Virus record (IMG/VR): IMGVR_UViG_3300048438_000153 | Span: 186,001 to 250,000 of that record | Direction: 5' to 3' (one strand) | DNA: 64,000 bases | Shown here: in pieces, positions 1 to 29,940 of the stretch | Layout: the number at the start of each line of letters is the position of its first letter | Numbering within the stretch: position 1 is the stretch's first letter | The notes under the pieces: generated by a model | What the model saw: the letters and a program-made list of their open reading frames with translations, nothing else | The model's database searches: none | What the model was told of the DNA's origin: nothing | Translations under genes and position numbers: made by a program

Positions 1-649
1 CAACGCTCTCGTCGTCGCCCTCATGACCTGTCTCTTGCTGAACTACGTCCTCTGCCATGCGACGCATTTTAGAAGCGAGACGGGCGTTAGCCGCTTTGAG
101 CATGGCGATTTCTTCAGCCATGTCTTCTTCAGCCATCATCTCAGCCATGACGTTATCTACGCCCTCGTCATCACCCTCGTAGCCTGTAGCCTCTTGCATC
201 GCATCCTCTCCAAGAAAGTCTGAAGCGATACGCTGGATCTTGGCATTGATCTGACGTGATGGGAGATCCATGTAACGAAGGGCAAGATCCTCGATCTCAT
301 CCTGTGATGCAGTCCTACCGAGACGGCTCTCAGCAATCTCGATGCACTTAGAAGCCTTGCGCTCCATAGCCTTGCGGAGATTCTGCTCGTAGAGGTCAGA
401 AGTCTCCTCATAGTCTGAAATGATGTCCTCAGTAGCTGCGGGATGATCTGCTTCCCAACTGTATGAAGCGGGGGCAGGTCCTGAGCGGTAAGGACCTTCG
501 TGAACGCCCTCGCCAAATTCTGAGTCGATGCCATAAGCGTCAACTGAGGGCTGTGCTTGTGATGCGGGATGACCGAAGCTCTCGAAGCCCTGATCATCAT
601 AACCTGGTAGGCTAGAAGTGTTAGCCCTACGGAAACTATTCCTAGACAT
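1..649 (-). CDS. Putative capsid scaffolding protein (partial; runs off the left edge, absent from the ORF track)
   Basis: AAAGGA RBS then ATG at 649. Open frame MSRNSFRRANTSSLPGYDDQGFESFGHPASQ...AEEIAMLKAANARLASKMRRMAEDVVQQETGHEGDDESV to the edge. Very acidic, helical, with a repeated TGxEGDDExV unit. Lies directly downstream of the protease gene. Confidence 0.6.
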   Translation of the reverse strand, partial: MSRNSFRRANTSSLPGYDDQGFESFGHPASQAQPSVDAYGIDSEFGEGVHEGPYRSGPAPASYSWEADHPAATEDIISDYEETSDLYEQNLRKAMERKASKCIEIAESRLGRTASQDEIEDLALRYMDLPSRQINAKIQRIASDFLGEDAMQEATGYEGDDEGVDNVMAEMMAEEDMAEEIAMLKAANARLASKMRRMAEDVVQQETGHEGDDESV

Positions 650-674
650 AGGATTTCCTTTCTGCATGAAGGGC

Positions 675-2093
675 TTACCGCCCATGAACGAATGTGATAA
701 GCTTGGAAAGTCTTACCAAGCGAAGTGAGTCTTTGCGAGTTAACTTTGAACCATGACACTCCTCAGCGTCAGAGATAAAGCTAGCCACTTTATTATACCT
801 GTCTGCTGAGTCTATTTGACTAGCAATACGGTACAGGTAAGAAGGTAGGTAGACGTCGAAACGATCATTGACGAGTCTGATGTTATCGACTGCCTCTTTC
901 TTAGAGGAGGCGATCTTCACAGCGGTGTCAAGAGCTGAGAAATAGAGATTCTTTCTCTTTATCTTTCTCTTACTCTTGCCCTCTTTAATGATTGTATCGT
1001 CAGCGGTAGTAGGGTCGCCTGTTGCGGGTACATTAACCGCTTTCTGAGCGAGCTCCTCTTTGATCTCCTTTTCGAGCTTCTTTCTCATGCGACCAACGAG
1101 AGCTTCAGTCACTACGCCCTCAAGTTGATCGAGAATAGAATCAGGAGTCTCTTCTTTCTTAGTGGATTCACCCTCTTCATCGCCCTCGCCATCTCCGAAG
1201 TCGAAAGGACCTGCGAGATGGGATGAAGCAGACTTGCTCAACCACTGCGGAGGAACTTGATTAAGTTTTTCCTCTTGTGGGTTGGCGTCAGCGGAAGGGA
1301 TTTCAAGAGTATTCCTAGCGACCGCGCCCTTAAAGGCAGGTATGGCAACCCAAGAAGCCTCAATGAAGGTTACGCCACCTGTTTCCCCCGTAGTCTCATG
1401 ACCACAAAGCTCGGCAACACGGTGCTTGTTTCCATTCTCATCGAAGAAAACATTACCCTTCTCATACTTAACGTGTCGGCACATCTGAGGCTCATCAGCC
1501 GCGACGTGACCGCACTTGGTGCAGATGGTGAAATCGACAGAACAACCCATCGACATACCGTTCATTTCACCCGATAAGATTTGTCTAACGAGATCTTCGT
1601 GCTTTCTATCTGTGGCTACAAGAATATCCACATAGATAGATTCACCAATATCTCGCATAACAGCATCAATGATACGCCCTTTAGAGAGCTCTTCAACTTG
1701 AACGTGTTCAACAAAGTTATGCGCCCCCACAAACGTCTTATAAGACTTCTTAATAACGCCCCTAGACCAACAGTCGAGGTTGTTATTGATGTACTTATCT
1801 GTCTCGGAGGTGACTCGATAGTCTGCATACTTTCTGTTAATATTCTGACCCTCTTCCTCAACTGAACCTGTCTTTACATTAGGGACAGAAACAGCGTCTA
1901 CGGAGCACACAATCGTAGAGTGTGTGAGTAGAAACCGATCAGGAGTGAAGGGCTCGCCTAAAAGCTCTTCTGCTTTCTTCTTAAGGCTCGAATCGAGGCG
2001 CTTTTGACCCGAAGCGACTCGAATACGATCCCACTCAAGACCATGAAGCTGAGGTGTAACTACCTGTGCTCTAGCGTACTTTGAAAATGCCAT
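675..2093 (-). CDS. Prohead maturation protease (HK97/herpes-like fold) with Zn-finger insert
   Basis: NFVEH (His), GMSMGC (Ser), CTKC...CRH...C insert and FIEASWVAIPA (LxEvSxVxxPA-like). Lies downstream of the portal gene. Confidence 0.75.
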   Translation of the reverse strand: MAFSKYARAQVVTPQLHGLEWDRIRVASGQKRLDSSLKKKAEELLGEPFTPDRFLLTHSTIVCSVDAVSVPNVKTGSVEEEGQNINRKYADYRVTSETDKYINNNLDCWSRGVIKKSYKTFVGAHNFVEHVQVEELSKGRIIDAVMRDIGESIYVDILVATDRKHEDLVRQILSGEMNGMSMGCSVDFTICTKCGHVAADEPQMCRHVKYEKGNVFFDENGNKHRVAELCGHETTGETGGVTFIEASWVAIPAFKGAVARNTLEIPSADANPQEEKLNQVPPQWLSKSASSHLAGPFDFGDGEGDEEGESTKKEETPDSILDQLEGVVTEALVGRMRKKLEKEIKEELAQKAVNVPATGDPTTADDTIIKEGKSKRKIKRKNLYFSALDTAVKIASSKKEAVDNIRLVNDRFDVYLPSYLYRIASQIDSADRYNKVASFISDAEECHGSKLTRKDSLRLVRLSKLITFVHGR

Positions 2094-2095
2094 GA

Positions 2096-2437
2096 TTAAC
2101 CCCTCCTGTCCTTTCTTTCCCTGAGATATCGACTAGCCACTTTCTTAGAAGAAGGGCCTGAAGACACAGGAACGACGCCTCTACCTCCGGGGATGGAGTC
2201 AGGCGTGTTCGCTAGGTTTTGATAATCACCTGATGTGTCCAAAACTAAGTCCTCTACAGGATAGCGAGATACGCCGTGTGGGAACTGAACATCGACCATG
2301 CCGATGGCGGGGAAAATCTGAACAACGACCCCTGATTTATCAGGTTTACCTAAGAAATACGGGTAAACCCTCATTCCGATCTCGAAACGACGAGCTCGCT
2401 GTTGATAATCAACATAAGATGTTGCAAGTCTCTGCAT
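2096..2437 (-). CDS. Nested in-frame 113 aa gene (MQRLATSYVDY...; SH3-like beta domain)
   Basis: Own AAGGAG RBS (2446-2451) and late-promoter-like motif (2477-2492) inside the larger ORF. Confidence 0.55.
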   Translation of the reverse strand: MQRLATSYVDYQQRARRFEIGMRVYPYFLGKPDKSGVVVQIFPAIGMVDVQFPHGVSRYPVEDLVLDTSGDYQNLANTPDSIPGGRGVVPVSSGPSSKKVASRYLRERKDRRG

Positions 2438-5400
2438 AGAAGAAACTCCTTGGAGGTCACTACTTAAGCAACCCCTTATAAAAGGTTTATTAGAAGAGAA
2501 TTTGCGCGCTATTTTCTGAGCCGAGAAAGATTTCATGCGCGAGGTCATTCTCCTAGATAGATAATGCGACCCAAAAGACTTCTGCGAGGCTAATCTGAAG
2601 CTCCTACTGCTGTAGTTCGTGTTGATTTCTTCCTCGATCTTCTCAAGCAGACCAATAAGCTGATCTTGATCCCTACGCGGAGAGTCTAGAAGCTCCATGA
2701 TCTTCCGCGCCCTATACTTATTAGGATCGCCCGCGAACGCCGAGTCTTCATTGTAGCCCTCAATGTACTCACTAAGATTAAGAGATCTTAAGTTGGCTTC
2801 TCGCATAGACGCAAAGAGAGATGCGATCATATCCTCGTCTTTTTCGAGGAGCGCCTTCGCAAGAGCTTTCTTGTTCGACTTTAACCACCCCTTGAACTTG
2901 GTTTCTTTCCTATCTTCTTTCTTGTCTTTAGAAAGACCCCCTCTTCCCCCATAGCCCTTTTCGTCTTCTGACACGATAGAGTACATATCCATAGAAACCG
3001 TAGTCACATAGTCCCTCAGAATATTCCTCATTTCAGGTGGCATGGGCATGGGGCAATCTGCGACAGGGACTTTCTGACCCGCCGAATCACCGTTCATTGG
3101 GATGTCAGGGCAATACTGAGGGTCTAACAGCTCTGTAATCTCGCCGAAAGGACCACTGTCTCCACCTACGGCGCGCACAAAGTCTTCATCCGAAAGAGAC
3201 TCCATGAACTGCCTCTTGTGTGACCTTACCTCTTCAGGGGAAAGGCCGTTGTTTTCCCTCGAAAGATCAGAAACAACCATCATCGCATCTTGGCTGTTCA
3301 TCTGCTTGGCGTATTCTAAGAAAAAAGGGTCTACTTTAGAGCGTCCTTGAGGAATCTCCGCGTCGCCCTCCATGAGCATGGAGACATACGCCCCCTCTAG
3401 AGCCGACTCATACTTGAGCCTCCGCGCTTTCCTCTGATTCTTAGAAAGAGACTTATCTGTGTCGAGCTCAGACAACTTCTGTGAATAGAAGCTGAAAGCA
3501 TCTTGTCTGCGCTGAGCGTCTGAACCCTCTTCACCTCTTAGTCTGTCTACGGTGAAAGAAAGATTCTCTCCATATAAGCCCTCGTTCTCAGAATATTGTA
3601 TCTTCGCATAGCTGTCTCTTGACACATTGATGAACTGAGAGTTGGGAGGCATCCCATAATCGAAGTCGTTGAGAAAGTTAGCCTCCATCACAGCAGCCGC
3701 CATCGCCTGACCGAGCTCCCCACCCTTCATGTCAGAAAGAGGTCTGTTAAAGAGATCCTCTACGTCTTTCTTAAGGTCTTGGAGAACCTCTTGAGTGGAC
3801 TTATCAGAGGTGAAAGTATTAGTGAGACGATCAGCAGAGGCTTTGTACCCCTCCTCGAAATCTTCGAGGTCTTCTTCAGGCAAGCCCCCTAAGAGGTCGA
3901 TGAGATCTGAAAGCTTCCCCATAGACTTACTGCCTTTCAGAGCACTGTCTCTAGGGAGAGTGTCTCTGAGCTTAGAGGTGAACTCCTCTCTAGTCTCTTG
4001 AGCTTCTTTCTGATCCTCCTCAGACTGTTCTTCTGAAGCTGAATCTCTATTCGCCTTGTACAGCTCATGAAAGAACTTGAGGTTGTCGTCTTTATCTATC
4101 GCTTTGCGCCCTCGGTCAGACTTGCCAAGAAGGAAGTTAATCGCGTCCCCTTTCTTAGTCTCCTCAAGCTCTTTCTCTGACGAGATCCCCTCAACATCAT
4201 CTGTGAGGTCAGGAAACATCTTATCTAGGTCGAGCCCATCAACAAAGCCGATCAACTCACCCATTCTCTTAGAGAGAACATCTCTCGTCTCCTCTGTCGC
4301 CTCTTTGTCTCTCTGTGCTTGGATCTCACTGAGTTTTCCCTCAAGCTCTGCTTTCAGATCATCATCAGCTACCTCTATCTGTGACTTGACGTCCTGTATT
4401 TGGTAGTCAAGTTCAGGAATCTCAATCTTAGAGACAGAAGAAAGACCCGCGAGATCTCCCGCCTTGAAGTCTTTATCGAGAGTCATCTCCGCGAGAACTT
4501 GAAGGAAACGCTCTCGATCAATCTCTTTGCTTCCTTTCTGAAGAAGAGAAATGAAGTTACGTGGGTCATCTTCAAATTGTCTCTTTAGACCTATCCTGAC
4601 CGCCTTGAGCCGACGCTGTTCTGCTTTCTGCGCCTTCTGTTTCTTAGCAGACTCGGATTTGTGGTGGTTATCCACCCTTTTGCGTACTTCAGAGTGAGCG
4701 GAAGCGTACTCCCTCGAATCGGGGTCTGCGTTATAGGCTGTGTAGAAAGTGACCTTATTCCCCGCCTCTGAATCAAAGCGTGGGTTCTTATCTTTCTTAA
4801 GCTTGTCTACAATACTATCCTTTATGGGATCTTTTTTTTTTTGCTTCTCTTGAGCCATCCTCAGAGCGAACCTCAGCGCAACTCTCTTAGCCACTCTTTT
4901 GTGGTTCATCGAGAGGTCACGATCTCCCCCCGCACCCCCACCTAAGTTTTCTAGGTCAGGGTCATCAAATTTAACTCTCTTTCGAGAGAGGTCTTTGCGA
5001 GTGGGTTTTTTCTTAGGCTTAGGCTTTACGAGCCTTTCTACCTCGCGCTCTTCTTTCTCAAAGCTAGAAAGAGTGGCTAGTCTCATGTGTTTGCAGACAT
5101 CAGGCGCTCTTAAGCTCGCCATCTTTCTTACATCGAAGCACAGAGGAGTGTATTCTTTCCTCATGACCCTCAGCTCTTGGCTGACCTCACCGCAAGTGGG
5201 GTGGTATTTCTTAGTGTCTTTCGAGTCGATCCACCGAGCCTGTAGATCGCGCATAATCTGAGCTTTTCCCTCTAGGTAGTCCTCATACTCGAACTTCTTA
5301 TCTAGTGAGGTAGCCTCTTCATAGAGAGCCTCTATAGTAAGAAAGTGCTTTCTAATACAGTCAGGGCATCTCTTTCGAGGGCTGTTGAGATGATCCTCTA

Positions 5401-5497
5401 AGAGCGCAGACTGCTTACAAATTTCTCTGAGATTGAAGAGAGGGTTCATCACAGGGAGGATGCCCATCTTCTCTTCTTTCTTATTTGCGTATCTCAT
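2096..5497 (-). CDS. Large putative head/internal virion protein (about 1133 aa)
   Basis: Long ORF between portal and protease. Start moved to ATG 5497 (MRYANKK) behind an AAAGAGGT RBS. N-terminal CPDCIRKH motif; charged and helical. Confidence 0.55.
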   Translation of the reverse strand: MRYANKKEEKMGILPVMNPLFNLREICKQSALLEDHLNSPRKRCPDCIRKHFLTIEALYEEATSLDKKFEYEDYLEGKAQIMRDLQARWIDSKDTKKYHPTCGEVSQELRVMRKEYTPLCFDVRKMASLRAPDVCKHMRLATLSSFEKEEREVERLVKPKPKKKPTRKDLSRKRVKFDDPDLENLGGGAGGDRDLSMNHKRVAKRVALRFALRMAQEKQKKKDPIKDSIVDKLKKDKNPRFDSEAGNKVTFYTAYNADPDSREYASAHSEVRKRVDNHHKSESAKKQKAQKAEQRRLKAVRIGLKRQFEDDPRNFISLLQKGSKEIDRERFLQVLAEMTLDKDFKAGDLAGLSSVSKIEIPELDYQIQDVKSQIEVADDDLKAELEGKLSEIQAQRDKEATEETRDVLSKRMGELIGFVDGLDLDKMFPDLTDDVEGISSEKELEETKKGDAINFLLGKSDRGRKAIDKDDNLKFFHELYKANRDSASEEQSEEDQKEAQETREEFTSKLRDTLPRDSALKGSKSMGKLSDLIDLLGGLPEEDLEDFEEGYKASADRLTNTFTSDKSTQEVLQDLKKDVEDLFNRPLSDMKGGELGQAMAAAVMEANFLNDFDYGMPPNSQFINVSRDSYAKIQYSENEGLYGENLSFTVDRLRGEEGSDAQRRQDAFSFYSQKLSELDTDKSLSKNQRKARRLKYESALEGAYVSMLMEGDAEIPQGRSKVDPFFLEYAKQMNSQDAMMVVSDLSRENNGLSPEEVRSHKRQFMESLSDEDFVRAVGGDSGPFGEITELLDPQYCPDIPMNGDSAGQKVPVADCPMPMPPEMRNILRDYVTTVSMDMYSIVSEDEKGYGGRGGLSKDKKEDRKETKFKGWLKSNKKALAKALLEKDEDMIASLFASMREANLRSLNLSEYIEGYNEDSAFAGDPNKYRARKIMELLDSPRRDQDQLIGLLEKIEEEINTNYSSRSFRLASQKSFGSHYLSRRMTSRMKSFSAQKIARKFSSNKPFIRGCLSSDLQGVSSMQRLATSYVDYQQRARRFEIGMRVYPYFLGKPDKSGVVVQIFPAIGMVDVQFPHGVSRYPVEDLVLDTSGDYQNLANTPDSIPGGRGVVPVSSGPSSKKVASRYLRERKDRRG
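2477..2492 (-). promoter_or_regulatory. Late-promoter-like motif TAATA-AACCT-TTTATA, internal to a CDS
   Basis: Matches the motif found upstream of about 14 other genes. Confidence 0.55.
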
Positions 5498-5504
5498 ACT
5501 AACT

Positions 5505-5553
5505 ACCTCTTTATCTGTGGGCTTTACTTTACTCACAGATAAAGAGGTTATCA
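5505..5553 (-). promoter_or_regulatory. Late-promoter-like motif (5538-5553) with 15 bp RBS-sequestering hairpin
   Basis: TGATA-ACCTC-TTTATC. Perfect inverted repeat 5505-5519 / 5534-5548 covering AAAGAGGT before ATG 5497. Confidence 0.75.
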
Positions 5554-5566
5554 GAGGAGAGTATTA

Positions 5567-7240
5567 TTAGAATCTACCGCCCTCTTCTGTGGGCTTCTCA
5601 TAACTAAGACCTAAGTTCTCCGCGATCTTCTCAATGACCTCTGAGTTTTCAGCGATCATGCGCCCCGCCTCACCGTAGATGCCTCTCAACACCTCGTTAA
5701 ACTGAGAGTCGTTCATCGTCCACATATCTCTTTCTAGCTTTCTCTTAGTAGACTCAGGATCTACGTTCAAGAGCTCCAAGATGATGTCGATGTCAATAGA
5801 CCCCTTTTGATAAAGGTTAAAGAGGCTGTCGAAGGTGTCTTGATTATCTCTCAGACCTAAACGAGTGAAGCTCAGAGTAGGGTGTACCACGACTTCTTCT
5901 CCATCCTCGTCCTCTTCAACGAAGCCCATTCTTTTACACATAGGCTTTAGAATGTTCTCCTCGACCATTTCTTGAAGAACCTCGCGCATAAGCATATACC
6001 GTGTATTGATCACTTCTAGATTAACCCTATCCCCCGCATAGCTAGACTCACCACTTAAGAGAGACTCCGTAACTCCCAATCCCGCATACATCTGACGGTC
6101 AGTCATGTCGTACTCGCCGTTCAAGTCCAAAAGGCGCTGATCAGAACCCATTTCTTCCCATGAAATCTGAAAGTTAGCGATGATCGAGTAATCAGGGTCT
6201 TGAAGCGCGAGATCGACTTGTTCTCTTAACGCCTCAACATCGTTCATGTCCATGTCTTCAGCATAGACAAGACGAATGGGGGTCATGTGGCGAGAGGCTA
6301 TTGAAGTTTGCGCCTGTCTTAGTTTATCTCTGTAGACCAAAATCCTCAAGCACCTCTCAAGCATTGAGTGACCTCTCGGCTCGTATTGAGATTTCTTCCT
6401 CGCCATGTAGTAGCAGAAAGAACCTAGCTCCGCATTGGTGTTGAGGGGAATATTCTTACCGTCGCGAATCGCATTAACCACATCTTCGGGCATAGAGTCT
6501 GCTATACGCATCGCTTCAGGGTCTTGCATAGCCGATCTTTCCACGACATCCCTAGTCTTAGAGTCAGGGACTAGAGAAATGATCTTCTCGTTCGTGAAAG
6601 GAAAAGACTCCATATGAACTTGCTCTGGTGGCAATATTCTGATCGCAGTCCACCCTTTGTAATTCTTCTTCATCCAACGATAAGCCCTATCGTCGGCATC
6701 CTCTCTACGATCATACCTGACTTGAGCCTCACCCTCTTGGGTAATCTCGTTAGTCCGAGTATGAGTTATATCTTTCGGCATATCGGGGTTGTTATCTTCA
6801 CAGAAAACAAAGACTTCCCCTAGAAGATTGTACTCATGTAAGATCTCTATGAGTCGATGAAGCAAGCCCACTCGCTTCGCCCATTTCTCACAGAAACGGA
6901 GGGAAGCCATCGCCATGTCTCTGTTCTTCGCTCTAGGTATGCCCAAGCGAATCTTAGAGAGAGGGAGCTCTGTGTGGAGGTCTACAGCCTGACCCACGAA
7001 AGGGTCAGTGCGATAGAAGAATCTGAAATAGTTCCTCTGCTCGTCTTGGCTTTGAGGAAGCTCAAGGAAATCGGTAGACAGCTCGGGCGAATAAAAGTTA
7101 CCGCCCGACCCCATCTGAGTACCTGATGTAGTCATAGCAACTTTCACGCGAGACTTCATTTCAGAAGCAGTCAGTGACCGAGATGTCGCCCTTGATCTAG
7201 GCAGTATCTTTCCGACCTCTTTTGGCTCTTCTTCACTCAT
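5567..7240 (-). CDS. Portal protein
   Basis: 557 aa next to terL. Portal-like segments FFYRTDPFVGQAVDLH, LLGEVFVF, ILPPEQV, PRGHSMLERC, AGLGVTESLL. Confidence 0.85.
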   Translation of the reverse strand: MSEEEPKEVGKILPRSRATSRSLTASEMKSRVKVAMTTSGTQMGSGGNFYSPELSTDFLELPQSQDEQRNYFRFFYRTDPFVGQAVDLHTELPLSKIRLGIPRAKNRDMAMASLRFCEKWAKRVGLLHRLIEILHEYNLLGEVFVFCEDNNPDMPKDITHTRTNEITQEGEAQVRYDRREDADDRAYRWMKKNYKGWTAIRILPPEQVHMESFPFTNEKIISLVPDSKTRDVVERSAMQDPEAMRIADSMPEDVVNAIRDGKNIPLNTNAELGSFCYYMARKKSQYEPRGHSMLERCLRILVYRDKLRQAQTSIASRHMTPIRLVYAEDMDMNDVEALREQVDLALQDPDYSIIANFQISWEEMGSDQRLLDLNGEYDMTDRQMYAGLGVTESLLSGESSYAGDRVNLEVINTRYMLMREVLQEMVEENILKPMCKRMGFVEEDEDGEEVVVHPTLSFTRLGLRDNQDTFDSLFNLYQKGSIDIDIILELLNVDPESTKRKLERDMWTMNDSQFNEVLRGIYGEAGRMIAENSEVIEKIAENLGLSYEKPTEEGGRF

Positions 7241-7469: not shown

Positions 7470-7472
7470 ACG

Positions 7473-10400
7473 TCACCTCTTCTTCCCTACAATTCTATTT
7501 CTTAAGCTGTGTCGATCACTTCGACTAGGAGAGGGAGATCTGCGCCTCGCATCCGAACCGCCTCTTAATCGAGGTGATCCCGCGAAGCCTTTACCCCCAT
7601 GTAAAACAGTACCCCCTATTGATGATCTACCCGAACCGCCCGCAAAGTATTTCTGCTTACCCACTTGCTTAGAAGCGAGCCAAACCATACGAGTGAGCGC
7701 GTCCGACATATCATCGTGCTTGCCCTGAACTTGAGGCGCTTCTACTGTGACGATGTGCTTACTCTGAACCTTCGCTTGAAGCTCCAAGAGCTCCTGAATG
7801 TAAGGCTCATGTCCGTTCTCTTCAGGGTGAAGGTCATCATACAGCCTGAGCCTCTCATCCCACATCATATCCTTAAAATTCTGAAAGATTTGAGAGGTGA
7901 GTTGCTTTGTCATTTGAACGGACTTCATTTGACCTAAACCGCGCTTGGCGAGGGCTTGCTCAAGAGGTATGCCCGCCCATTGGTCAAAGATTCCCTCGAC
8001 TATGTAGAACTTCTTAGTGAGAGAAAGAATCCAATCAGCGACATCATCAAAGTCTAGCCTTTCTTTCTCAGCGTAGTCTCCTTCTCCCGCCTTTATCTGA
8101 ACTACAAGATCAACAACAATATCGTCCTCTTCTAAGTGACCAATAGCCACCGCCGTTCCGTCACCTACGAGCGCGAGGTCAATGCCCATGAAATGAGGCT
8201 GTCGAGCTGGCGCTTTCTGACGCGCTCTAAGCTTAGGGTCAACGCAAGCAAAAAGGTCTTCAGACTTCTCGATCCAACCTCTCGTTCTGTCTGTAAACTC
8301 ACCACCATACTCCGTAAAGAAAACAGCGGCGTTCTTAAGATAGTGTTTCTCGAACTCTTCAGCGGGGACAGTGGGATTGACCTCCCATGTAGGCGCTTGA
8401 ACTGCGAGGATGTTCTCACTCGCTCGACCACCTCTCATACCAATCTGAAAGAGGCTGTAGAAAAGACCCTGTTTACCTAGCGGAGAAGAGATCAGAATAA
8501 TTCGACCCTCAACCTCACCTATAGGCACAGTGGGGTTGTTGGGGTCTTTAGCTGAGTATGCTGAGGTCGAAGGCACAACCGCGTTATAGACCTCTTCCGC
8601 GCCCGACTGACCCGACTCTGTGAAGTGAGCCACCTCATCAAGAATAACGCAGATATTACCCGCACCACGCAAGCCCTTCGCCACGCACGATCTGAATGTG
8701 ACCTTGAGTGTAGCTTTCGCGTTAGAGTTCTCTATGTAACGACCGTATTTATCTACGTCATTGGGCGTCTGAAAGCGAGCGTAAGAAAGAGTGTTGTTCG
8801 CGGTGTATGGACCGAAGAAAGAGCAGTTTCTATAGTGTCCTGACACCTCTTGGTAGAGAAGACCCGCTTGGTCTTTGTCAGTCGCCACAGAGATAATCTG
8901 AATGTTGTTACTTGCGGGCAACCCGTAGTATTTCTGAGGGTCGCCTTTCTTGATCAACTTATACGTCTCATAAGCAGCGATACACGCAGAAATCGTGGTG
9001 TTGTGGTTTGTGAAGGCGTTCCCCACAAACATCGAGCCGTCAGGTACGTTGAGGTCATAAACAGGACTCCTCGACCTCTCAACAGAAACGATCTCGTCAA
9101 AGTAATACCCTGAGTCTAGGATCAAGTTAATCTTAGACTTGAGGTGATCAGAAACCTTATCCGAAGAGGCCACTCTGTGAAGGAGTGTCAGCGTGGGGGA
9201 CGTTGAAGACACCAATTTGCTAGATAAGCCCTTTCCCCTTAAGAAAGACCCGAACCCTTTTGGCGAGCAACTTTGGTCTTTAAGACCGTAGCCCAATCGT
9301 CTACTGAGCTTGTTAGCTCGCTCTTTCTTTTTTCTAGAAATGAACCCAATGTCGTCAAGAAACCTACGATAAGATTGAGTTCCCTTGAGAGACACCACAC
9401 CCTCCTCAAACCCCGAATACCTCCTACCAAATCGACGAGATGTGAAAACTCCCATGTTCATCAAGAGAATCTGAGCTTCTTTGAGTATGAGAGGAGAGGC
9501 TGAAGACAAGGAAATCTCACGCCCGCCCTTATCGGCAATATGACCATCTGTCTCGAAAAGACCCCGAAAGAAAGCGCATTGGACAGAGTAAGGGCTCTCT
9601 AGGATCGCGAAAGGGATTGTCTTAGTCTTGTAAACTACATCAACTCCCCAACCCAATCGCTGAAGAAAAGTCCTGATCTCTTTGCTGTATGTGTTCACTC
9701 TGTAAACACTACCCTCTCCCTCGATAACAGACACTTTTCCAAATAGAGAAACCATCTTTGAGACGAGGTAGTTCTTAAAGTCCTCACAACCTGTGGTGAC
9801 GCCCACCTTCTTCCCACTAGTCCAACCGCCGTCACCCACTAAAATACCGAGCATCTCCCCCCAATCCTCATCAAGATAGTCAGGGAGCTTGCTCTTCACA
9901 GAGAGGTCTTCCTTGTACTCTGAAAGAGGCACGTAATGCTCAGGGAAAAGACCTCTACTCTTGTTAAGACAAGCGAGATCACCCACCTGTATGTCTTCAA
10001 GGTACTTCCAAGATATGTTGTATTCCTTGTCGAGAACTTTAATCCTGTGGTTGGGCGTACCCTCTAACTCAAACCCCGAGTAGGTCATGATCTTCTTAGT
10101 CTCTTTGACGCCTCCGTTATAGAAGAAAGCCGTTTGCGCTGTAGCCCCTCCCTCTTGAAGAACTTGAACAGAGAGAGGCTGATATTCGGGCGCACCATGA
10201 GAAGCGTCTCCTAGTGAGTCGAGCCTCTTCATCCCACCAGGCGTGGGGATCAGAGTATCACCTGTGACACACTTACCTGAGCGCCTTCCGATTGAAAGTA
10301 TCATCTCTCGGCGCTGTTTTCCGGGGATAACCTCTCCGACGTTACAACGACCCTCGTCGTAGAGTTTCTTAAGGTACGTCTTTTCTGTGTGTACCTCAAT

Positions 10401-10607
10401 GTTCTCTCTACGCCAATCAGAAATCTCAAAGGTATTTACATCATCGAGTTCAAGCCCATAGTGTACTTTCAGAATGACCCTCTGCACAGGAAAGAGCTTC
10501 ATCTTCAAGCCCCAAGGAGACTCAACAAACTCGATGATGTCTACGTTCTTCGTAGACTGTTTCCCCGCTCTCGCTGAGGCAGATATTGCTAATGATGAAA
10601 AAGACAT
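7473..10607 (-). CDS. terL: Terminase large subunit, intein-containing
   Basis: Walker A GRRSGK|T split by the intein, Walker B CVILDE, coupling motif ISSP, RNase H-like nuclease MGIDLA...HDDMSDA. Confidence 0.95.
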   Translation of the reverse strand: MSFSSLAISASARAGKQSTKNVDIIEFVESPWGLKMKLFPVQRVILKVHYGLELDDVNTFEISDWRRENIEVHTEKTYLKKLYDEGRCNVGEVIPGKQRREMILSIGRRSGKCVTGDTLIPTPGGMKRLDSLGDASHGAPEYQPLSVQVLQEGGATAQTAFFYNGGVKETKKIMTYSGFELEGTPNHRIKVLDKEYNISWKYLEDIQVGDLACLNKSRGLFPEHYVPLSEYKEDLSVKSKLPDYLDEDWGEMLGILVGDGGWTSGKKVGVTTGCEDFKNYLVSKMVSLFGKVSVIEGEGSVYRVNTYSKEIRTFLQRLGWGVDVVYKTKTIPFAILESPYSVQCAFFRGLFETDGHIADKGGREISLSSASPLILKEAQILLMNMGVFTSRRFGRRYSGFEEGVVSLKGTQSYRRFLDDIGFISRKKKERANKLSRRLGYGLKDQSCSPKGFGSFLRGKGLSSKLVSSTSPTLTLLHRVASSDKVSDHLKSKINLILDSGYYFDEIVSVERSRSPVYDLNVPDGSMFVGNAFTNHNTTISACIAAYETYKLIKKGDPQKYYGLPASNNIQIISVATDKDQAGLLYQEVSGHYRNCSFFGPYTANNTLSYARFQTPNDVDKYGRYIENSNAKATLKVTFRSCVAKGLRGAGNICVILDEVAHFTESGQSGAEEVYNAVVPSTSAYSAKDPNNPTVPIGEVEGRIILISSPLGKQGLFYSLFQIGMRGGRASENILAVQAPTWEVNPTVPAEEFEKHYLKNAAVFFTEYGGEFTDRTRGWIEKSEDLFACVDPKLRARQKAPARQPHFMGIDLALVGDGTAVAIGHLEEDDIVVDLVVQIKAGEGDYAEKERLDFDDVADWILSLTKKFYIVEGIFDQWAGIPLEQALAKRGLGQMKSVQMTKQLTSQIFQNFKDMMWDERLRLYDDLHPEENGHEPYIQELLELQAKVQSKHIVTVEAPQVQGKHDDMSDALTRMVWLASKQVGKQKYFAGGSGRSSIGGTVLHGGKGFAGSPRLRGGSDARRRSPSPSRSDRHSLRNRIVGKKR
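9000..10271 (-). mobile_element. Intein (424 aa) with LAGLIDADG homing endonuclease
   Basis: Starts CVTGDT, block B GTPNHRI, LAGLIDADG motifs LGILVGDG and FRGLFETDG, ends VYDLNVPDGSMFVGNAFTNHN followed by Thr. Confidence 0.95.
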
Positions 10608-14590: not shown

Positions 14591-15271
14591 TCACCTCGCT
14601 AAGTATCTGTCAGCGACCCTACGCGCTGAGAAAGAATGGGTTGTACTAGCAGTCTTTGATCTAGGCTCAGCGAAGCTTCTTTCGGTCGGGCCTGTGTTAT
14701 CCTTGTCCTTCTTTTTCTTCTTCGCCTTCTCCACCATCTTCTTAGACTGAACTTTGCTAACTAAGCCTGTCATGTCTTCCTGTTGCTCAGCCCACTCTTC
14801 GGGATCTTCCTTGATACCCTCGATCTCTCTGAGAACGTCCTCAACTAGCTTAGTCTGAGCATCTAACCAATGATCCGCATTGATCTCATCATAGATCGTG
14901 TCAGAAATGGCTGATAGGGCTTCTACTATATTCATGAACTGACGGCGCATCGCCTTGATTTCCATGATGTAGCCTCGACCCCCGAGCGCGCCATCGGGGG
15001 AGATGTCCCTACTCTTAATCTTAGCAAAGACTGCGTAAGCTGTCATCGCGTGACCTAGCGACATGAGAGTGGACTTGAGGACGCAAGCGATCTGCTTACT
15101 GCATTTCTTGTTCAATCTATGAGACGGGTCCATCTTTCTTTCTGAAGGCGCGTGTTGATTCCAAGCCCATGCGTTAGAATCGTCACCGTGATCCTTGATG
15201 AACCTAACTTCACCCGCTGTCTTAATACGACCTTCGGGCTTAATCTGTTTCTTATGGAGATCCTGAGACAT
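14591..15271 (-). CDS. Putative virion protein
   Basis: 226 aa. Late motif and hairpin upstream; ends ARRVADRYLAR. Confidence 0.6.
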   Translation of the reverse strand: MSQDLHKKQIKPEGRIKTAGEVRFIKDHGDDSNAWAWNQHAPSERKMDPSHRLNKKCSKQIACVLKSTLMSLGHAMTAYAVFAKIKSRDISPDGALGGRGYIMEIKAMRRQFMNIVEALSAISDTIYDEINADHWLDAQTKLVEDVLREIEGIKEDPEEWAEQQEDMTGLVSKVQSKKMVEKAKKKKKDKDNTGPTERSFAEPRSKTASTTHSFSARRVADRYLAR

Positions 15272-19438: not shown

Positions 19439-20293
19439 TTAGCGACTAAACCTGTTGTATCGCCTTTGCTTTCTAACCCTTGCGCGTTGCCTACTCTGCT
19501 GAGTACGAGGCTTCCTAAGAGTTCTCCTCATCTTCTTGGTGCGGTTTTTAAGACCACTTCCCTTAAGAGCTTTTCTTAAGCCCTTACCAATAGCTCGGCG
19601 CACAGACGACTTGAGAGGACCTCTCCTCTTTCCTGACATGATCTCGTCAGCCAAGACCATAAGATCCTCTGCGAGTAGCTCTGCTTCTTTATCTGAAGCA
19701 GTGCGGTCAGTGCTCAAATCTGAAAAAAAAAAGTCCTCTGAAGCAACGCGATCAAGACCGATATCATCAATGATCTCATCATCGTAGAAAGAAGCCCTAC
19801 GATTTTTCATCGCTTGATAAAAATAATGATTATGACTCTTAGGTTGCTTCTCCTCAAGATCCATCAATTCCATCTCCTCTTCGCGAGTGAGCATGCCCTT
19901 TGATTTCTGACGGTTAAGATGCATAAGCCTGTGGGCAATGTTACCCTTAATTCTCGGGTCGCGCCTCTCAGCGGGAGTTTGGTATCCGAATCCAGCAACG
20001 CGATCAAGACCGATATCATCAATGATCTCATCATCGTAGAAAGAAGCTTTCTTACCAAGCTGACCAAGAGCTGAGATGTCTTCTTTGTCGTTACCCATGT
20101 TTTTCTTAATACGGTCTTGACTCATCTCGCCCGTTGAAGGATCGAAAGCACCCTCGTACTTATCCCAATCTTCTGCGGCTTCAGGGTTTTTCTTCTTAAA
20201 GTTCTTCTTCCACTCTTCGTAAGCTTTAGTGTCACCTTTAGGGATGCGAGCTTCTTTCTGAAACTCACTAGCGATGCGATCAAAAATATCCAT
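19439..20293 (-). CDS. Putative internal head protein with Arg-rich C-terminus
   Basis: 284 aa. Many [KR]xAS motifs, protamine-like tail, late motif at 20340-20355. Confidence 0.6.
   Translation of the reverse strand: MDIFDRIASEFQKEARIPKGDTKAYEEWKKNFKKKNPEAAEDWDKYEGAFDPSTGEMSQDRIKKNMGNDKEDISALGQLGKKASFYDDEIIDDIGLDRVAGFGYQTPAERRDPRIKGNIAHRLMHLNRQKSKGMLTREEEMELMDLEEKQPKSHNHYFYQAMKNRRASFYDDEIIDDIGLDRVASEDFFFSDLSTDRTASDKEAELLAEDLMVLADEIMSGKRRGPLKSSVRRAIGKGLRKALKGSGLKNRTKKMRRTLRKPRTQQSRQRARVRKQRRYNRFSR
19742..20047. repeat. Exact 54 bp direct repeat (19742-19795 and 19994-20047)
   Basis: Both copies encode ASFYDDEIIDDIGLDRVA. Confidence 0.95.
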
Positions 20294-20865: not shown

Positions 20866-20869
20866 GATT

Positions 20870-22072: not shown

Positions 22073-22077
22073 GGTAA

Positions 22078-22620
22078 TTAGACCTTAAGAGGATCGCCAT
22101 TAGGGTCAAAAAGACGCTCAATCTCAAACTCTCCGCCCTCACCTACTTTCACAGACCAAAGGTCTTTTGTAGACTTGTGTACGAGCTCGCCTGTAGCATT
22201 CGCATTTGAAGCGCCAAAGGCGGTTAAGAGAGACGGACCTGAGAGGATGATGAAGTCATCTAGACTAGCCACCCTCATCGAAGCTACTCTGAGAAAGTTG
22301 ACGCTCACACGGTCAATCTTATCCCCCCTACCATCCCACTGAACGAACACCTCTCCGTCCATAGACGTGACCTCACCCGAAGCAGTGCGAACCTTAACAA
22401 CAGATCCCTTTCTACCCGCCATAGGAAGCCTATTTGGGATTAAGAGTCCATTGTTGGTAGTAGAGACTACTCTAACGCCCTCAGTGAACTTAGCGAGCCT
22501 CTTAGACGTGACTGTTCGGTTAACGTCAACTAAGTCTGAGACTTTGGTGTTAATCACCTCGTCCATGCTTGCGGTCTTTTGAGCACTCGCAAACATATCA
22601 TTGAGCCATGAATCACTCAT
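22078..22620 (-). CDS. Putative virion protein (SH3-like beta domains)
   Basis: 180 aa with KTAS/RTAS/RVAS motifs. Late motif and RBS hairpin at 22619-22676. Confidence 0.6.
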   Translation of the reverse strand: MSDSWLNDMFASAQKTASMDEVINTKVSDLVDVNRTVTSKRLAKFTEGVRVVSTTNNGLLIPNRLPMAGRKGSVVKVRTASGEVTSMDGEVFVQWDGRGDKIDRVSVNFLRVASMRVASLDDFIILSGPSLLTAFGASNANATGELVHKSTKDLWSVKVGEGGEFEIERLFDPNGDPLKV

Positions 22621-22672
22621 AATACCCCTCTTTCTTTTCTGTGTACCTAAGAAAGAAGGATTATAAACAATT

Positions 22673-22720
22673 AAGCGAACCTAGAAAGGTTCTTGAGTTA
22701 GAAGCTAACTAGATTCGCTT
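22673..22720 (-). terminator. Long hairpin downstream of ssb (terminator or processing site)
   Basis: AAGCGAATCTAG...CTAGGTTCGCTT, 12 bp stem with one G-U pair, followed by AATTGTTT. Confidence 0.45.
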
Positions 22721-22758
22721 GGGTGCTGATCAAATCAGCCTAGAAGACACTCAGAGTA

Positions 22759-23463: not shown

Positions 23464-23555
23464 GTGGAATCTCCTGTTGTGTTGAGCCGAAATCGGCTTG
23501 TTTAAGTAAGAGCTGTGGAGGTCATCCGAAGTGATGTCCCGTTGCTCGAAAGGTA

Positions 23556-23565
23556 TATATCAGAA
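23556..23565 (-). promoter_or_regulatory. Early/middle promoter-like motif TTCTGATATA (also at 26845-26854 minus, 33394-33403 minus, 63065-63074 plus)
   Basis: Same TCTGATAT core upstream of ssb, recD2, holB and recA; resembles an extended -10 (TGnTATA). Confidence 0.55.
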
Positions 23566-23591
23566 AGGATTAGGGGGTAGGCAAAAAAAGA

Positions 23592-24341: not shown

Positions 24342-24688
24342 TTCTCACCTAACTTCGTGATAAGGTGGGTGTAGTTACCCTTGATCTTCTTATTTACCGA
24401 TTCCATTTGGCTCTGTGTGATCAGACCACCCGCGGCGGCTTGCTCATGGGCGAGAATGTTCACTTCTTTCCCTAGAATGTGGGATGCAATCTTAGCATCC
24501 TCAAGAGAGAGCATCTCACCACCATCTGTATCATCGGGGCTTCCATAATTTACAGTCATTGACAGGAATACATCACCGCCACTGCGAGGGGCTTTGACAA
24601 TACGAGAAACCATAATCTGAGAGACTTTTGTACCCTTTTTGATAATGGTGATTTTCTCTTTCAACTCTTTCAGCTTGTCCTCTGTCAT
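24338..24688 (-). CDS. Hypothetical protein (116 aa)
   Basis: GGAG RBS, ATGA overlap with the next gene. Confidence 0.65.
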   Translation of the reverse strand: MTEDKLKELKEKITIIKKGTKVSQIMVSRIVKAPRSGGDVFLSMTVNYGSPDDTDGGEMLSLEDAKIASHILGKEVNILAHEQAAAGGLITQSQMESVNKKIKGNYTHLITKLGEK

Positions 24689-24715
24689 ATCTTTCTCCGT
24701 ATGAGAGGGTTAATC

Positions 24716-26803: not shown

Positions 26804-26864
26804 AGTATACCTTTCTGTGAGAAGGGGGTTTTACCTGTGTTCTACATATCAGAATTTACCGAAA

Positions 26865-27983
26865 CTAGTTTCGATATTGAGCTTCCCATTTCTTTATGTC
26901 ATCTAACTCTTCTGGAGTCAGAGGTTCAGATAAGTTCAACTGATTGATTCCCTTTAAGACTTCCTTTTCTATTATAAGGGTACTAATAGTCATCAGTCTA
27001 GATCTCATACCCTGTAAGTATTTCCTACCGACCCTAACGATCTCTGCTCTAGTCTCTTCTCCTATTTCTGAAGGAAATAGCCCTTCAAACATGGAAGGGT
27101 CTGCGCTATCCAAGTAAGTCCCCACAATGTCTCGCGCGTAACTCTTAGCTTCAGCCTTAACTCTGTCTCTTAACCGACGCGCTTTAATAGAGCCTCTCAC
27201 GCTGAAGTCAACGTATTTCGCAGCCTCTTCAACCATCTCAGCAAGTTCACCATCATCCAAGACTGAAAAGGTTCTGCTTCTGATCTCCGCCTCAATATCT
27301 GAAGCTAGAGGATTGGCGCTAAAGAACTTCTTCACCCTAGCTCTTGGATGAAAACCTCTTCTTACGGGAGTCTCTGCGCTCGACCCTGAATCTTGAGCCT
27401 TTTGCCGAGATATTTCTCTCCGCCTCTCATCCCTAGACGTAACCCTCTTAGAAATGTCGGGCATCTTAGATGCTAAGTACTGAGGAAAGTATCTTCGAGC
27501 GACCATTGGAAGCACATTTTCTTTAAGAAAGGAAGATGCTCTAGAGTAAGCAGACTCGCCCCCATTCACAGCCTCTTCGAGTACTTCACTTGCATCGACG
27601 TATGGCGCAACAAGGCTTTTAAGTTTATCGTTTGTCGCTAGTTCTTTCATCTCATCGTAGTCGTAGAATGAGTCTAGAGCCCTAGAAATGTCCTGATTGG
27701 TAATCTGACTCAAAAGGCGAGTGACGAGGCTATTCTTTCTGCGAATCCTCCTCGCGTTACCTCCAATGAAAGCACCTTCACCCTCAGATCTGTACTGATC
27801 TACGAGGATCTTCTCAGACTTTCTCCATAGAGGTGTTTGAGTCACGAGATTATAGAGGATCGAAGCCATCTCCTCAGCGAGATTATCCTCAGAAAAACCA
27901 ATAGCATCGACTTTCGTGTAGTCGATATTAGAGGCGATATGGATACTCGCGACCCTACGCGCAAAAGCTCTTTTAGAAATCAT
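26865..27983 (-). CDS. Putative virion-packaged protein
   Basis: Leader MISKRAFARRVASIHIAS; AGGGAG RBS; late motif 28031-28046 and hairpin. Confidence 0.55.
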   Translation of the reverse strand: MISKRAFARRVASIHIASNIDYTKVDAIGFSEDNLAEEMASILYNLVTQTPLWRKSEKILVDQYRSEGEGAFIGGNARRIRRKNSLVTRLLSQITNQDISRALDSFYDYDEMKELATNDKLKSLVAPYVDASEVLEEAVNGGESAYSRASSFLKENVLPMVARRYFPQYLASKMPDISKRVTSRDERRREISRQKAQDSGSSAETPVRRGFHPRARVKKFFSANPLASDIEAEIRSRTFSVLDDGELAEMVEEAAKYVDFSVRGSIKARRLRDRVKAEAKSYARDIVGTYLDSADPSMFEGLFPSEIGEETRAEIVRVGRKYLQGMRSRLMTISTLIIEKEVLKGINQLNLSEPLTPEELDDIKKWEAQYRN

Positions 27984-28043
27984 TGTGATCACTCCCTAAG
28001 TGTTATTTCTTCAACTACCTGAGAGAGCGAGATAAAGACTCTA

Positions 28044-29021
28044 TTAAGAAACCCCTATGACCGACCAATCAAAGTCCCCAACCATCCCATTCGCCGAATA
28101 ATCTGTGACAGTACCCTCAAAGAAATTCTTCATGGAGTCTCCTGAGATGATCCAATCGAGCCAAGAAAGAGGGTTTTCTTTCTGCTTAAAGATCGGCTTC
28201 AAACCAAGCTGAAGCAGTCTACGATCTGCCAAGTACCTGACGTATGTCTTAATGTCCTGAGAGGTCAGCTCATTAATCGTGTCGTTTGATCCGTAGACGA
28301 GATCGACAAGCGCGTCCTCAAGCCCTACCGCTTTCGTGTAGTTCGTGTAGATGTAACTCTTGAGCTCATCTGTCACTACTTGAGGGTTCTCAGTGCAGTA
28401 TGTGTGAAAGAGCTTAGTCATACCCTCAACGTGTGTCGTCTCGTCACGGATAGACCATTCAACTACCTCACACATACCCTTCATCTTTCCGAATCTCTGA
28501 AAGTTGAGGAGCATCACGAAAGCAGAAAAGAGACTCATGCCCTCGTTACACACCGAGCGCGCCATCTCGAACGCCATGTGAGCTTCATCTGAAAGACCTT
28601 TTGGAGCTTCCATCATGAACTCGATCTTCTCTCTCATAGCATCAAACTCTAAGAAAGCTGAGTATTCTTTCTCTGCAAACCCGAGAGTGTCATTCAAGAG
28701 CGCATACGCCCTTTGATGAGTACCCTCGCGGTTGGCGAAAGAAAGAAGCATATTCCTCACTTCGTTATTCTTGAAGAAAGGAATAAAGACCTCACAGTAG
28801 TTACCACCAACTGCGACATCACTTTGAGTGAAGATTCTCAAAATCTGAGTAATGTGTTCTTTCTCAGACTTTGAGATTTCACTGCCCTTCCACTGAGAGA
28901 CATCCTCTTGGAGCTTGGCTTCCCAAGTACCCCAATGGATCTTCTCATGGTCTTCCGCAAAGGTCATCGCCCATGCGTACTGAAAGGGCTTATAAGTCTT
29001 ACTGAACTCTGTAAGAGACAT
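28044..29021 (-). CDS. nrdB: Class Ia ribonucleotide reductase beta subunit
   Basis: FTQSD, REGTHQRAY (radical Tyr), NEGMSLFSAF, RDETTH, NFFEGTVTDY. Confidence 0.96.
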   Translation of the reverse strand: MSLTEFSKTYKPFQYAWAMTFAEDHEKIHWGTWEAKLQEDVSQWKGSEISKSEKEHITQILRIFTQSDVAVGGNYCEVFIPFFKNNEVRNMLLSFANREGTHQRAYALLNDTLGFAEKEYSAFLEFDAMREKIEFMMEAPKGLSDEAHMAFEMARSVCNEGMSLFSAFVMLLNFQRFGKMKGMCEVVEWSIRDETTHVEGMTKLFHTYCTENPQVVTDELKSYIYTNYTKAVGLEDALVDLVYGSNDTINELTSQDIKTYVRYLADRRLLQLGLKPIFKQKENPLSWLDWIISGDSMKNFFEGTVTDYSANGMVGDFDWSVIGVS

Positions 29022-29106
29022 ATTTTATGTCCTCCTGTGTTGAAAGGGATAGCATAGTACCCTCTCGGAGAACATAAAAGAGCTAGTACCTGTTAAAGTA
29101 CCGATC

Positions 29107-29940
29107 TTAGAGGTAATCCCTCCGATACCTACGCCTAGCGAGCTTAACTTCCTTGTACGGAGGCTTCCACTCAATCTCACCCTCTTCCATCAGCTTTTGA
29201 GCTCTCGGCACTTCATCAGGGTTAATGACAGGCATATCAACTCGGGCGGGCGCCCAGCCTGGTACTTGCTTGTTCATCGCGCGAACATTTGCACCCATCT
29301 GCTTGATGCCTTCGTTGACAGAACCGAAGCTCTTAATGAGAATGTCCTGAACCTTCTTTGGTGAGGTGAACTCGTTACCGTTGATAGCGAGGTTCTTGAT
29401 CTCGTTCATCACATTCTGATCTGTGTAACGAGTGATGTCGCCCTTACCGGGATTCCCATTTCTCGTTGGGAAAAGACCCTTTGTGATGATGTTGAGAACC
29501 TTAAGAAGTGTCTTGCCCTCAAGGTCTGCGACATAACCCCCCACCTTGACATTAGGTCCGAAAGCGATGATGGCTGCTGACCATCTGTGGTGTCCGTCCA
29601 TAATCTGACCGTCATTAGAAATGATCGCACCAAGATCAGTAGTAAGCTTTCCATCAAGCATAGCGAGAGCCATACCCACAGACTTACCGAGAACCATTGT
29701 GGTCTGAGAAGGTTTGAGGTTGCTCGCTTGAGCCTTCGTCTTTCTCACAGAAATCTTATCGCTCTTGTTATCGCCTGAATCAACCAAGTGCTTAGCGAGA
29801 TCGGCATCTACGTTTGAAAGACGACCAGCGTTCTGAATCTCTCTATACACCTCTTCAGGCGCTAAGACACGAGCGGTGCGCTCCATACGAGCGACTCTTA
29901 TTTCTAAATCTCTAAGGACTTCTGATGCGGTTCTTCTCAT
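29107..29940 (-). CDS. ParB/Srx-like domain protein with putative capsid-targeting leader
   Basis: LKPSQ...IISNDGQIMDGHHRWSA; N-terminal MRRTASEVLRDLEIRVARMERTAR. Confidence 0.75.
   Translation of the reverse strand: MRRTASEVLRDLEIRVARMERTARVLAPEEVYREIQNAGRLSNVDADLAKHLVDSGDNKSDKISVRKTKAQASNLKPSQTTMVLGKSVGMALAMLDGKLTTDLGAIISNDGQIMDGHHRWSAAIIAFGPNVKVGGYVADLEGKTLLKVLNIITKGLFPTRNGNPGKGDITRYTDQNVMNEIKNLAINGNEFTSPKKVQDILIKSFGSVNEGIKQMGANVRAMNKQVPGWAPARVDMPVINPDEVPRAQKLMEEGEIEWKPPYKEVKLARRRYRRDYL

Follow-up and report, generated by a model that had tools for sequence, protein, structure and literature searches.

A [KR]-x-A-S motif as a probable recognition site of the head-maturation protease homolog of an uncultivated phage

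Head module and protease

The virus record IMGVR_UViG_3300048438_000153 is a linear contig of 275,102 bp with an estimated completeness of 88%, and the stretch analyzed here, referred to as the window, comprises its bases 186001–250000 (64,000 nucleotides). A head module occupies the left part of the window on the minus strand, in the order large terminase, portal, a 1146-amino-acid (aa) protein, a homolog of phage head-maturation proteases, an acidic 681-aa protein, a decoration-like protein and the major capsid protein (MCP). The protease gene is located between the portal side of the module and the genes for the acidic protein, designated here as the scaffold-position protein, and the MCP. 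In this study, we deal with the tetrapeptide Lys/Arg-x-Ala-Ser (designated as [KR]xAS), which recurs in the protease, the scaffold-position protein and several proteins of no assigned function, and with its relation to the protease. The features are listed in Table 1.

The gene arrangement is of the phage G type, in which a decoration gene is followed by a short MCP gene. The MCP, encoded to the left of the window, consists of 292 aa, matches PHROG 2522 (E 4e-51) and has neither a propeptide nor the motif. It is 89% identical to the MCP of the uncultured 485-kb phage LR745208.1, and the decoration-like protein encoded between the scaffold-position and MCP genes consists of 202 aa. A megablast search of the phage collection gave no close nucleotide relative of the genome. 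Our own greedy call yielded 262 open reading frames (ORFs), which cover 94% of the genome. An ORF listed at 1–649 in an earlier note on the window, which had been made by eye, is present there merely as the N-terminal third of the scaffold-position protein, which runs off the left edge of the window.

The protease is composed of an N-terminal peptide (residues 1–27), a catalytic domain (approximately 28–265), a linker of acidic character and, at the C-terminus, a helical domain (approximately 380–470). Besides the family given in Table 1, it matches PHROG 2774 and no other PHROG. A profile of the catalytic domain matched 2,381 cluster representatives (50% identity) in a library of 1.8 billion proteins. 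An AlphaFold (AF2) model of this domain, made with an alignment of 80 diverse homologs, was confident (pLDDT 90.9), and its top Foldseek matches were T4 gp21 and herpesvirus proteases, with weak E-values. According to the model, the catalytic domain has a fold of the T4 gp21/herpesvirus assemblin type. The structure alignments did not include Tunturi_5 or the two other sequences taken from annotated records. A full-length model with a 22-sequence alignment had a pLDDT of 48 overall and of 81–89 in the C-terminal helices, and a model of the protease domain in complex with the last 57 residues of the scaffold-position protein scored 0.02, with a partner pLDDT of approximately 30, values that count neither for nor against binding.

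His58, His130 and Ser181 are invariant in 80 homologs drawn from 50%-identity clusters. These three residues would fit a Ser-His-His triad and are candidates for the catalytic ones. The domain also contains a zinc-ribbon insert with an invariant Cys cluster. His207 is invariant among the 22 closer homologs, five of which gave weak Zn_ribbon matches; apart from these, no Pfam family matched the protease or the 22 homologs. Given the match to PHROG 18299 and this insert, the description of the enzyme as a Zn-finger protease in the earlier note was a fair one. Many protease homologs (P0002, P0009, P0014, P0027, P0057 and others) have lengths of 900–1850 aa, and their matches to the 263-residue domain fall into two to four separate stretches, which suggests one to three inteins or other insertions in the gene of these relatives.

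The protease carries five [KR]xAS sites, compared with 0.4 expected: one at the junction of the N-terminal peptide and the catalytic domain, one in the linker and three in the C-terminal helical domain. Linker sites at aligned positions 267–287 amount to 36 over 44 distinct homologs, and no site lies inside the catalytic domain of any of these 44. Among 81 single-domain proteases (50%-identity representatives), the first 30 or so residues contain 33 sites versus 3.9 expected and the C-terminal region contains 127 versus 19.9, with the core near expectation. As judged from these alignments, the motif appears to mark both boundaries of the catalytic domain, as expected of predicted autoprocessing sites.

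The orthologous N-terminal site also bears on the nature of the motif. Of the 80 diverse proteases, 61 have Arg or Lys at position 25; at position 28, Ser is found in 25 of them and Ala in 26. A basic residue at position -3 from Ser resembles the sites of eukaryotic basophilic kinases, and RRAS is the core of Kemptide, so the motif could be regarded as the phosphorylation site of a basophilic Ser kinase of the R-x-x-S type. However, Ala takes the place of Ser at half of these orthologous sites, which means that no phospho-acceptor is needed there, and the strict Ala at -1 and the beta-branched residue at -2 are unlike kinase sites. The genome, estimated to be 88% complete, gave no match to the protein kinase domain (PF00069). 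We thus consider phosphorylation highly improbable.

Enrichment of the motif in the genome and among relatives

Genome-wide, [KR]xAS occurs 146 times, compared with 56 expected from within-protein shuffles and 74 expected under a first-order Markov (dipeptide) model. In a scan of every a-x-b-c pattern over the 262 ORFs, R.AS ranked first (78 versus 25.9; Poisson p ~1e-16) and K.AS second (68 versus 29.1), so that the pattern picked by eye in the earlier note is statistically the strongest of its kind in the proteome. Twelve rearrangements of the motif with the same composition, used as controls, occurred 42–85 times each. The specificity extends over four consecutive positions, named here from the proposed scissile bond: P3 is enriched in Lys/Arg and in no other residue, P2 prefers Thr (9.6-fold), Val (6.8-fold) and Ile (4.1-fold), with Lys, Arg and Leu also favored, P1 is Ala and P1' is Ser. 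The [SG] form of the motif proposed in the note was not borne out at its Gly variant: [KR]xAG is not enriched (32 versus 44.8 expected).

Palindromic restriction-type sites are strongly avoided throughout the genome (GCNGC, 85 versus ~872 expected; GGNCC, 95; CCNGG, 75), and many 6-bp palindromes are wholly absent (CTCGAG, 0 versus 120; GTCGAC, 0 versus 76; TTCGAA, 0 versus 53; CCTAGG, 0 versus 50). The Ala-Ala dipeptide is five-fold depleted (82 versus 392 expected) because it always makes the avoided GCNGC. This avoidance probably explains why Ser occupies the fourth motif position in this genome, where relatives use Ser or Ala.

Such distortion of dipeptides, together with a few sites that lie in internal duplications (in the 284-aa protein and a tail fibre), would be in favor of the motif being an artefact of local composition, internal repeats or restriction-site avoidance. 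We find this scarcely credible in view of the rearranged controls and the Markov expectation. The Ala-Ser dipeptide alone is merely 1.26-fold over-represented, and the motif is enriched in distant relatives of different composition and not in phiKZ or T4. In addition, synonymous codons at the Lys/Arg, Ala and Ser positions of the motif are used at the genome average, which indicates selection on the peptide rather than on the DNA; an origin as a DNA motif was rejected on this ground.

The ten ORFs in which the earlier note had reported the motif, all on the minus strand, do contain it, with 40 sites versus 4.8 expected from within-protein shuffles. Its claim of dense recurrence holds for five of them, which are individually enriched (the scaffold-position protein at -1360..685, the protease and the 866-, 284- and 180-aa proteins); the other five have one to three sites each, mostly near a terminus. 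All the remaining genes together have 106 sites versus 51 expected, and this two-fold excess implies that the putative substrate set reaches beyond the range covered by the note. The MCP, decoration, portal and terminase proteins, when pooled, have one site versus 1.1 expected, and the sheath and tail fibres are near chance (3 versus 1.9). The same is true of the nine annotated enzymes in the window (7 versus 3.9). The motif is thus enriched in the scaffold-position protein and candidate internal head proteins, and no such enrichment is seen in shell, portal, terminase or tail proteins. No function was assigned to the motif-rich proteins or the scaffold-position protein by searches against Pfam and PHROG.

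The scaffold-position protein has nine sites versus 0.6 expected. Five of these are encoded beyond the left edge of the window; one of the five, REAS, precedes the conserved tail DELSKLWESAPDVSKYFG by 22 residues. A C-terminal site of the form [KR]xA[SAT] is found 15–35 residues from the end in 46 of 48 homologs, and it is followed by a conserved, nearly invariant tail, given as ..LSKLWESAPDVSKFFG or as ..(D/E)LSKLWESAPDVSK(F/Y)FG. Otherwise, the homologs are very divergent in length and sequence, and a search of the ESM Atlas with this protein returned nothing.

For comparison among relatives, we used 80 IMG/VR loci with protease identities of 40–100%, whose ORFs were grouped by homology to the genes of this genome. 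The observed/expected numbers of [KR]xAS were 442/47.7 in scaffold-position proteins, 200/24.6 in proteases and 144/45.9 in homologs of the 1146-aa protein; the corresponding values were 13/10.1 for MCP, 2/6.5 for decoration, 8/7.0 for portal, 6/9.8 for terminase and 0/3.3 for sheath proteins. This picture also holds in sets drawn from 50%-identity clusters. In the head regions of LR745208.1 and phage G, no gapped tripeptide is more over-represented than K.AS, which is also enriched in the Tunturiibacter phage Tunturi_5; in the mycobacteriophage Tonenili (Bixzunavirus), R.AS holds second place. [KR]xAS is not enriched in phiKZ (7 versus 6.7) or T4 (10 versus 8.0). The proteases of Tunturi_5 and phage G have K[VI]AS just past the catalytic domain. 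In pairwise alignments with LR745208.1, some sites are kept (KRCAS/KKCAS, and RIAS/RQAS at about the same place), and its homolog of the 866-aa protein has six sites, some at aligned positions. In Tonenili, the protease domain forms the N-terminus of gp249 (L104:19872-23582), a 1236-aa protein encoded two genes upstream of the MCP, and this protein may represent a fusion of protease and scaffold like that of herpesvirus UL26.

Table 1. Positions of the features discussed in the text (window numbering; residue numbers refer to the respective protein)
Feature	Position	Strand	Remarks
Head-maturation protease homolog, 472 aa	675..2093	-	PHROG 18299 (E 1.6e-15); phage homologs annotated as head/capsid maturation protease
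Stretch spanning candidate catalytic residues	1551..1706	-	His130, 1704-1706; Ser181, 1551-1553
Zinc-ribbon insert	1398..1523	-	C191, C194 and C205 invariant; C230 and H232 nearly so in wider set
RVAS, protease residues 25-28, predicted N-terminal autoprocessing site	2010..2021	-	[KR]xAS aligned there in 37 of 44 distinct homologs
KSAS, protease residues 287-290, linker after catalytic domain, R-site-like	1224..1235	-	Linker sites cluster in homologs
KIAS 393, RIAS 422 and KVAS 435, C-terminal helical domain of protease	780..917	-	393 in 20 of 44 and 422 in 16 of 44 homologs
Acidic scaffold-position protein, 681 aa (genome 184640-186685)	1..685	-	N-terminal 228 aa in window; between protease and decoration/MCP genes
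Scaffold-position sites in window	RKAS 350-361; RTAS 305-316; RIAS 221-232; RLAS 71-82	-	
1146-aa protein between portal and protease	2096..5536	-	3 sites; C-terminal tag KKVASRYL at 2123-2146
866-aa protein of no assigned function, candidate internal/core protein	11986..14586	-	10 sites along whole length versus 0.97 expected
226-aa protein of no assigned function	14591..15271	-	KTAS at residue 206; C-terminal tag RRVADRYL at 14600-14623
284-aa protein of no assigned function	19439..20293	-	5 sites versus 0.28 expected; two in internal duplicated segment
180-aa protein of no assigned function	22078..22620	-	4 sites versus 0.12 expected
375-aa protein of no assigned function	26865..27992	-	N-terminal tag RRVASIHI at 27936-27959
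Leader MRRTASEVLRDLEIRVARME, 20 residues, of 277-aa protein (29107-29940)	29881..29940	-	One of ten leader genes; other nine outside window
Portal protein	5567..7240	-	PHROG 16240; 0 sites; context and negative case
Large terminase with intein	7473..10607	-	1 site versus 0.63 expected; context and negative case

Several other genes of the window have features of their own. An intein that contains a homing-endonuclease domain of the LAGLIDADG type (Pfam Intein_splicing and LAGLIDADG_3) splits the terminase gene, and the 639-aa terminase homolog of LR745208.1 has no intein. A 397-aa protein (15376-16569, minus strand) has a long low-complexity tract of Ser and Pro (..SSSKPSSSSPSSSSPSSSKPSSSSPS..) toward its C-terminus and, after this, a basic tail. 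Two giant tail-fibre-like genes, both on the minus strand, encode proteins of 1844 aa (46533-52067) and 1804 aa (41057-46471); the former contains repeated units, e.g., ALDLANTYQAKDASLD at residues 640 and 783.

Terminal tags and the shared leader

A second motif, [KR][VI]A..[YFW][LIF], overlaps the first and occurs 13 times versus 0.86 expected, with 8 of the 13 located at most 15 residues from a terminus; in the relatives, it occurs 58 times versus 3.3 expected. A basic helix at protein ends had already been proposed for this window. The motif behind it is real, but two of the examples given (KRVAKRVALRF and QKIARKF) are internal and another (KKVADKWL) lies in no called gene. The tail K[KR]VASxY[LM] of the 1146-aa protein is kept in closer relatives, and others have a Cys-rich ribbon instead.

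Ten proteins scattered over the genome share a 20-residue N-terminus, M-R-R-T-A-S-E-[IV]-[LI]-x-x-L-E-x-R-[IV]-A-x-L-E. One of them (29107-29940) had been noticed before, though not recognized as a member of a family. The remainders of the ten proteins are mutually unrelated (BLASTP, all E > 0.3), and no function was assigned to any of them from Pfam or PHROG. [KR]xAS stands at residues 3–6 in all ten leaders; a further site inside the helix or at its end is present in three (RKAS, RTAS and RVAS), and two more have a non-basic LTAS. Sixteen more leader ORFs were found in related loci, where several cluster just downstream of the head genes and where a second [KR]xAS often follows directly after the helix. 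Codons 8–20 of the leader vary synonymously with the residues kept, and codons 1–7 are nearly fixed in nucleotides (ATG AGA AGA ACA GCT TCA GAA, e.g., window 29920-29940), which hints at an added translation-initiation constraint or a recent spread. As far as the sequences indicate, this MRRTASE leader is a better candidate for a targeting signal than the RVAxRYL tag.

Two further observations concern the leader genes. The non-preferred Ser codon TCA is used in nine of the ten. Two of them, L092 and L093, are adjacent on the minus strand outside the window (genome 140934-142307), and their upstream 45 nucleotides and first 27 codons are near-identical with unrelated remainders, suggesting a recent duplication or recombination of a 5' module.

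A ClpP-family gene (E 1e-29), also outside the window (genome 90653-91336, plus strand; L105), overlaps a leader ORF just downstream (91302-91736, MKRTASEILSDLDRRLARLERTAS). Because it is present and lies directly upstream of a leader ORF, this ClpP-like protease, or else a protease of the host, might be thought to cut the motif. To our knowledge, however, ClpP has no endoproteolytic sequence specificity of this kind. In addition, the occurrence of the motif follows that of the assemblin-fold family, and hundreds of diverse homologs have it on the flanks of the enzyme's own domain. Cleavage by another enzyme is therefore very unlikely.

The terminal positions are relevant to the main rival explanation, that the motif is bound and not cut. 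It would then serve as a docking or assembly motif through which the scaffold, the protease tails and the cargo bind each other, the portal or the shell interior. In line with docking, the motif and its RVASxYL extension are approximately two-fold denser near protein termini, a cut in MRRTAS would free just five residues, and some sites lie inside helices of the C-terminal domain of the protease. On the other hand, the sites lie on either side of the catalytic domain and ahead of the scaffold tail, at places where T4, SPN3US and herpesviruses are processed. A small P1 Ala and a P1' Ser or Ala are typical of a protease subsite, and nine to ten copies along the scaffold suit degradation better than binding. 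We regard docking as unlikely on balance.

Proposed maturation and comparison with known systems

Taken together, [KR]-[TVIKRL]-A-S is probably the recognition site of the head-maturation protease homolog, a serine protease of the assemblin fold with a zinc-ribbon insert. Directly established are the statistics of the motif, the conserved positions of the sites, the fold of the protease and the co-occurrence of the motif with the protease family. In the prohead, the protease would trim itself at residues 25–28 and in the linker past the catalytic domain, and would cut the scaffold-position protein at about nine sites. One of these cuts would free the conserved C-terminal tail of approximately 20 residues, mirroring the herpesvirus M-site; by analogy, this tail probably holds the scaffold to the capsid shell. 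The protease may also process a set of proteins of no assigned function, which are probably packaged in the head. The two terminal tags that overlap the motif, namely the 20-residue leader and the short RVASxYL, are candidate signals that would bring cargo to the prohead core and then be clipped.

The cleavage proposed in the earlier note finds partial support, insofar as the motif tracks the protease family and sits at the expected positions. By analogy with assemblin, the predicted scissile bond is most likely that between Ala and Ser.

Several points weigh against recognition by this protease. In profile searches, the enzyme has no sequence match to Pfam Peptidase_S77/S78 or any PDB chain; the S77 and S78 models found nothing in the genome, although the S77 search was likewise empty in all the control genomes. 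T4 gp21, which has the same fold, cuts after Glu, and the fold hence does not predict specificity. Several sites are altered in LR745208.1, the nearest annotatable relative (RTAS to RTAM or RTAA; KIAS to STS), in which the homolog of the 180-aa protein has RTAM and no exact motif. Sites lost or shifted in this way may individually not be used, although turnover of this sort is normal for short linear motifs. One RTAS of the 180-aa protein sits in an apparently conserved folded segment, and removal of five residues by a cut after the Ala of MRRTAS would be odd for a targeting leader. The scaffold-position proteins gp20 and gp21 of phage G are without the motif. Finally, the 80 loci are mutually related, so that their counts are not independent events, and the source genome is an uncultivated IMG/VR record known from sequence alone.

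Prohead proteases and their cleavage motifs are already known for T4 and phiKZ-like phages. The phage-G-like protease clade includes, besides phage G, the Bixzunavirus mycobacteriophages, one acidobacterial jumbo phage and metagenomic clusters in the thousands. In searchable papers, we found no published report on the cleavage specificity of this clade, and the literature searched contained no cleavage data or cleavage-mapping proteomics for Tunturi_5 or phage G. If recognition by the protease is correct, it would be possible to predict from sequence alone which proteins of uncultivated giant phages are processed and probably packaged. Ala-Ser specificity and a scaffold-tail-releasing site would provide a second, independent link between phage and herpesvirus maturation beyond the fold, and the leader could be considered as a tag by which foreign proteins might be loaded into capsids. 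It is conceivable, although rather doubtful, that a large and mostly uncultivated clade of phage-G-like jumbo phages, whose protease family comprises more than 2,000 clusters at 50% identity, matures in a herpesvirus-like manner throughout. This would involve cuts between the Ala and Ser of [KR]-x-A-S, R- and M-site-like release and a portable leader that is sufficient for capsid loading and is then clipped; such a clade-wide code would make protein packaging readable in uncultured giant phages.

Phage G gp19, Tunturi_5 gp331 and the Bixzunavirus capsid maturation proteases are true sequence homologs of the present protease. As in this genome, [KR]xAS occurs just past their catalytic domain and is enriched in the regions of their head genes. 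Phage G differs in that its scaffold-position proteins do not have the motif, and Tonenili differs in that the protease domain heads a 1236-aa protein.

With phiKZ gp175 and SPN3US gp245, which act on A-x-E sites, the present system shares a short motif that marks multiple sites; in those phages, the cuts lie in the propeptides of many head proteins. SPN3US gp245 cleaves itself and so loses its C-terminal propeptide, and some of the propeptides that it removes have a length of only 20–24 residues (PMC10052503). The motif is a different one, with [KR]xAS at chance in phiKZ, and the present head module follows the phage G type.

The proposed self-processing, the dicing of the scaffold and a short N-terminal peptide shared by unrelated proteins have counterparts in T4, as generally known and as in part discussed in PMC10052503. 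In contrast, gp21 cuts after Glu at L/I-x-E sites, whereas the motif here has no Glu and is not enriched in T4; the present protease does not match Pfam Peptidase_S77, and the 292-aa MCP has no propeptide. The 20-residue helical leader, a candidate targeting signal, is unrelated in sequence to the T4 capsid targeting sequence and similar to it in logic.

A further parallel is with herpesvirus assemblin (UL26 family), in which cleavage at the R-site YLQA-T frees the protease domain and cleavage at the M-site (VQA-S in pseudorabies virus) detaches the C-terminal part of the scaffold that binds the MCP (PMC4498786). Assemblin and the present protease share no detectable sequence similarity. P3 is basic here and Val, Leu or Ile in herpesviruses, the zinc-ribbon insert is extra, and the scaffold has many sites here compared with one in herpesviruses. 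Protease and scaffold are separate genes here: the protease has a C-terminal extension of 180 aa, and the scaffold-position protein is encoded by the adjacent gene. Nevertheless, the predicted P1 is Ala and the predicted P1' is Ser (Ala in relatives), one predicted site lies between the catalytic domain and the C-terminal extension, and another lies 15–35 residues from the scaffold's C-terminus, before its conserved tail. With the fold shared, the correspondence in the position of the sites and in the Ala-Ser/Thr pair is a close one.

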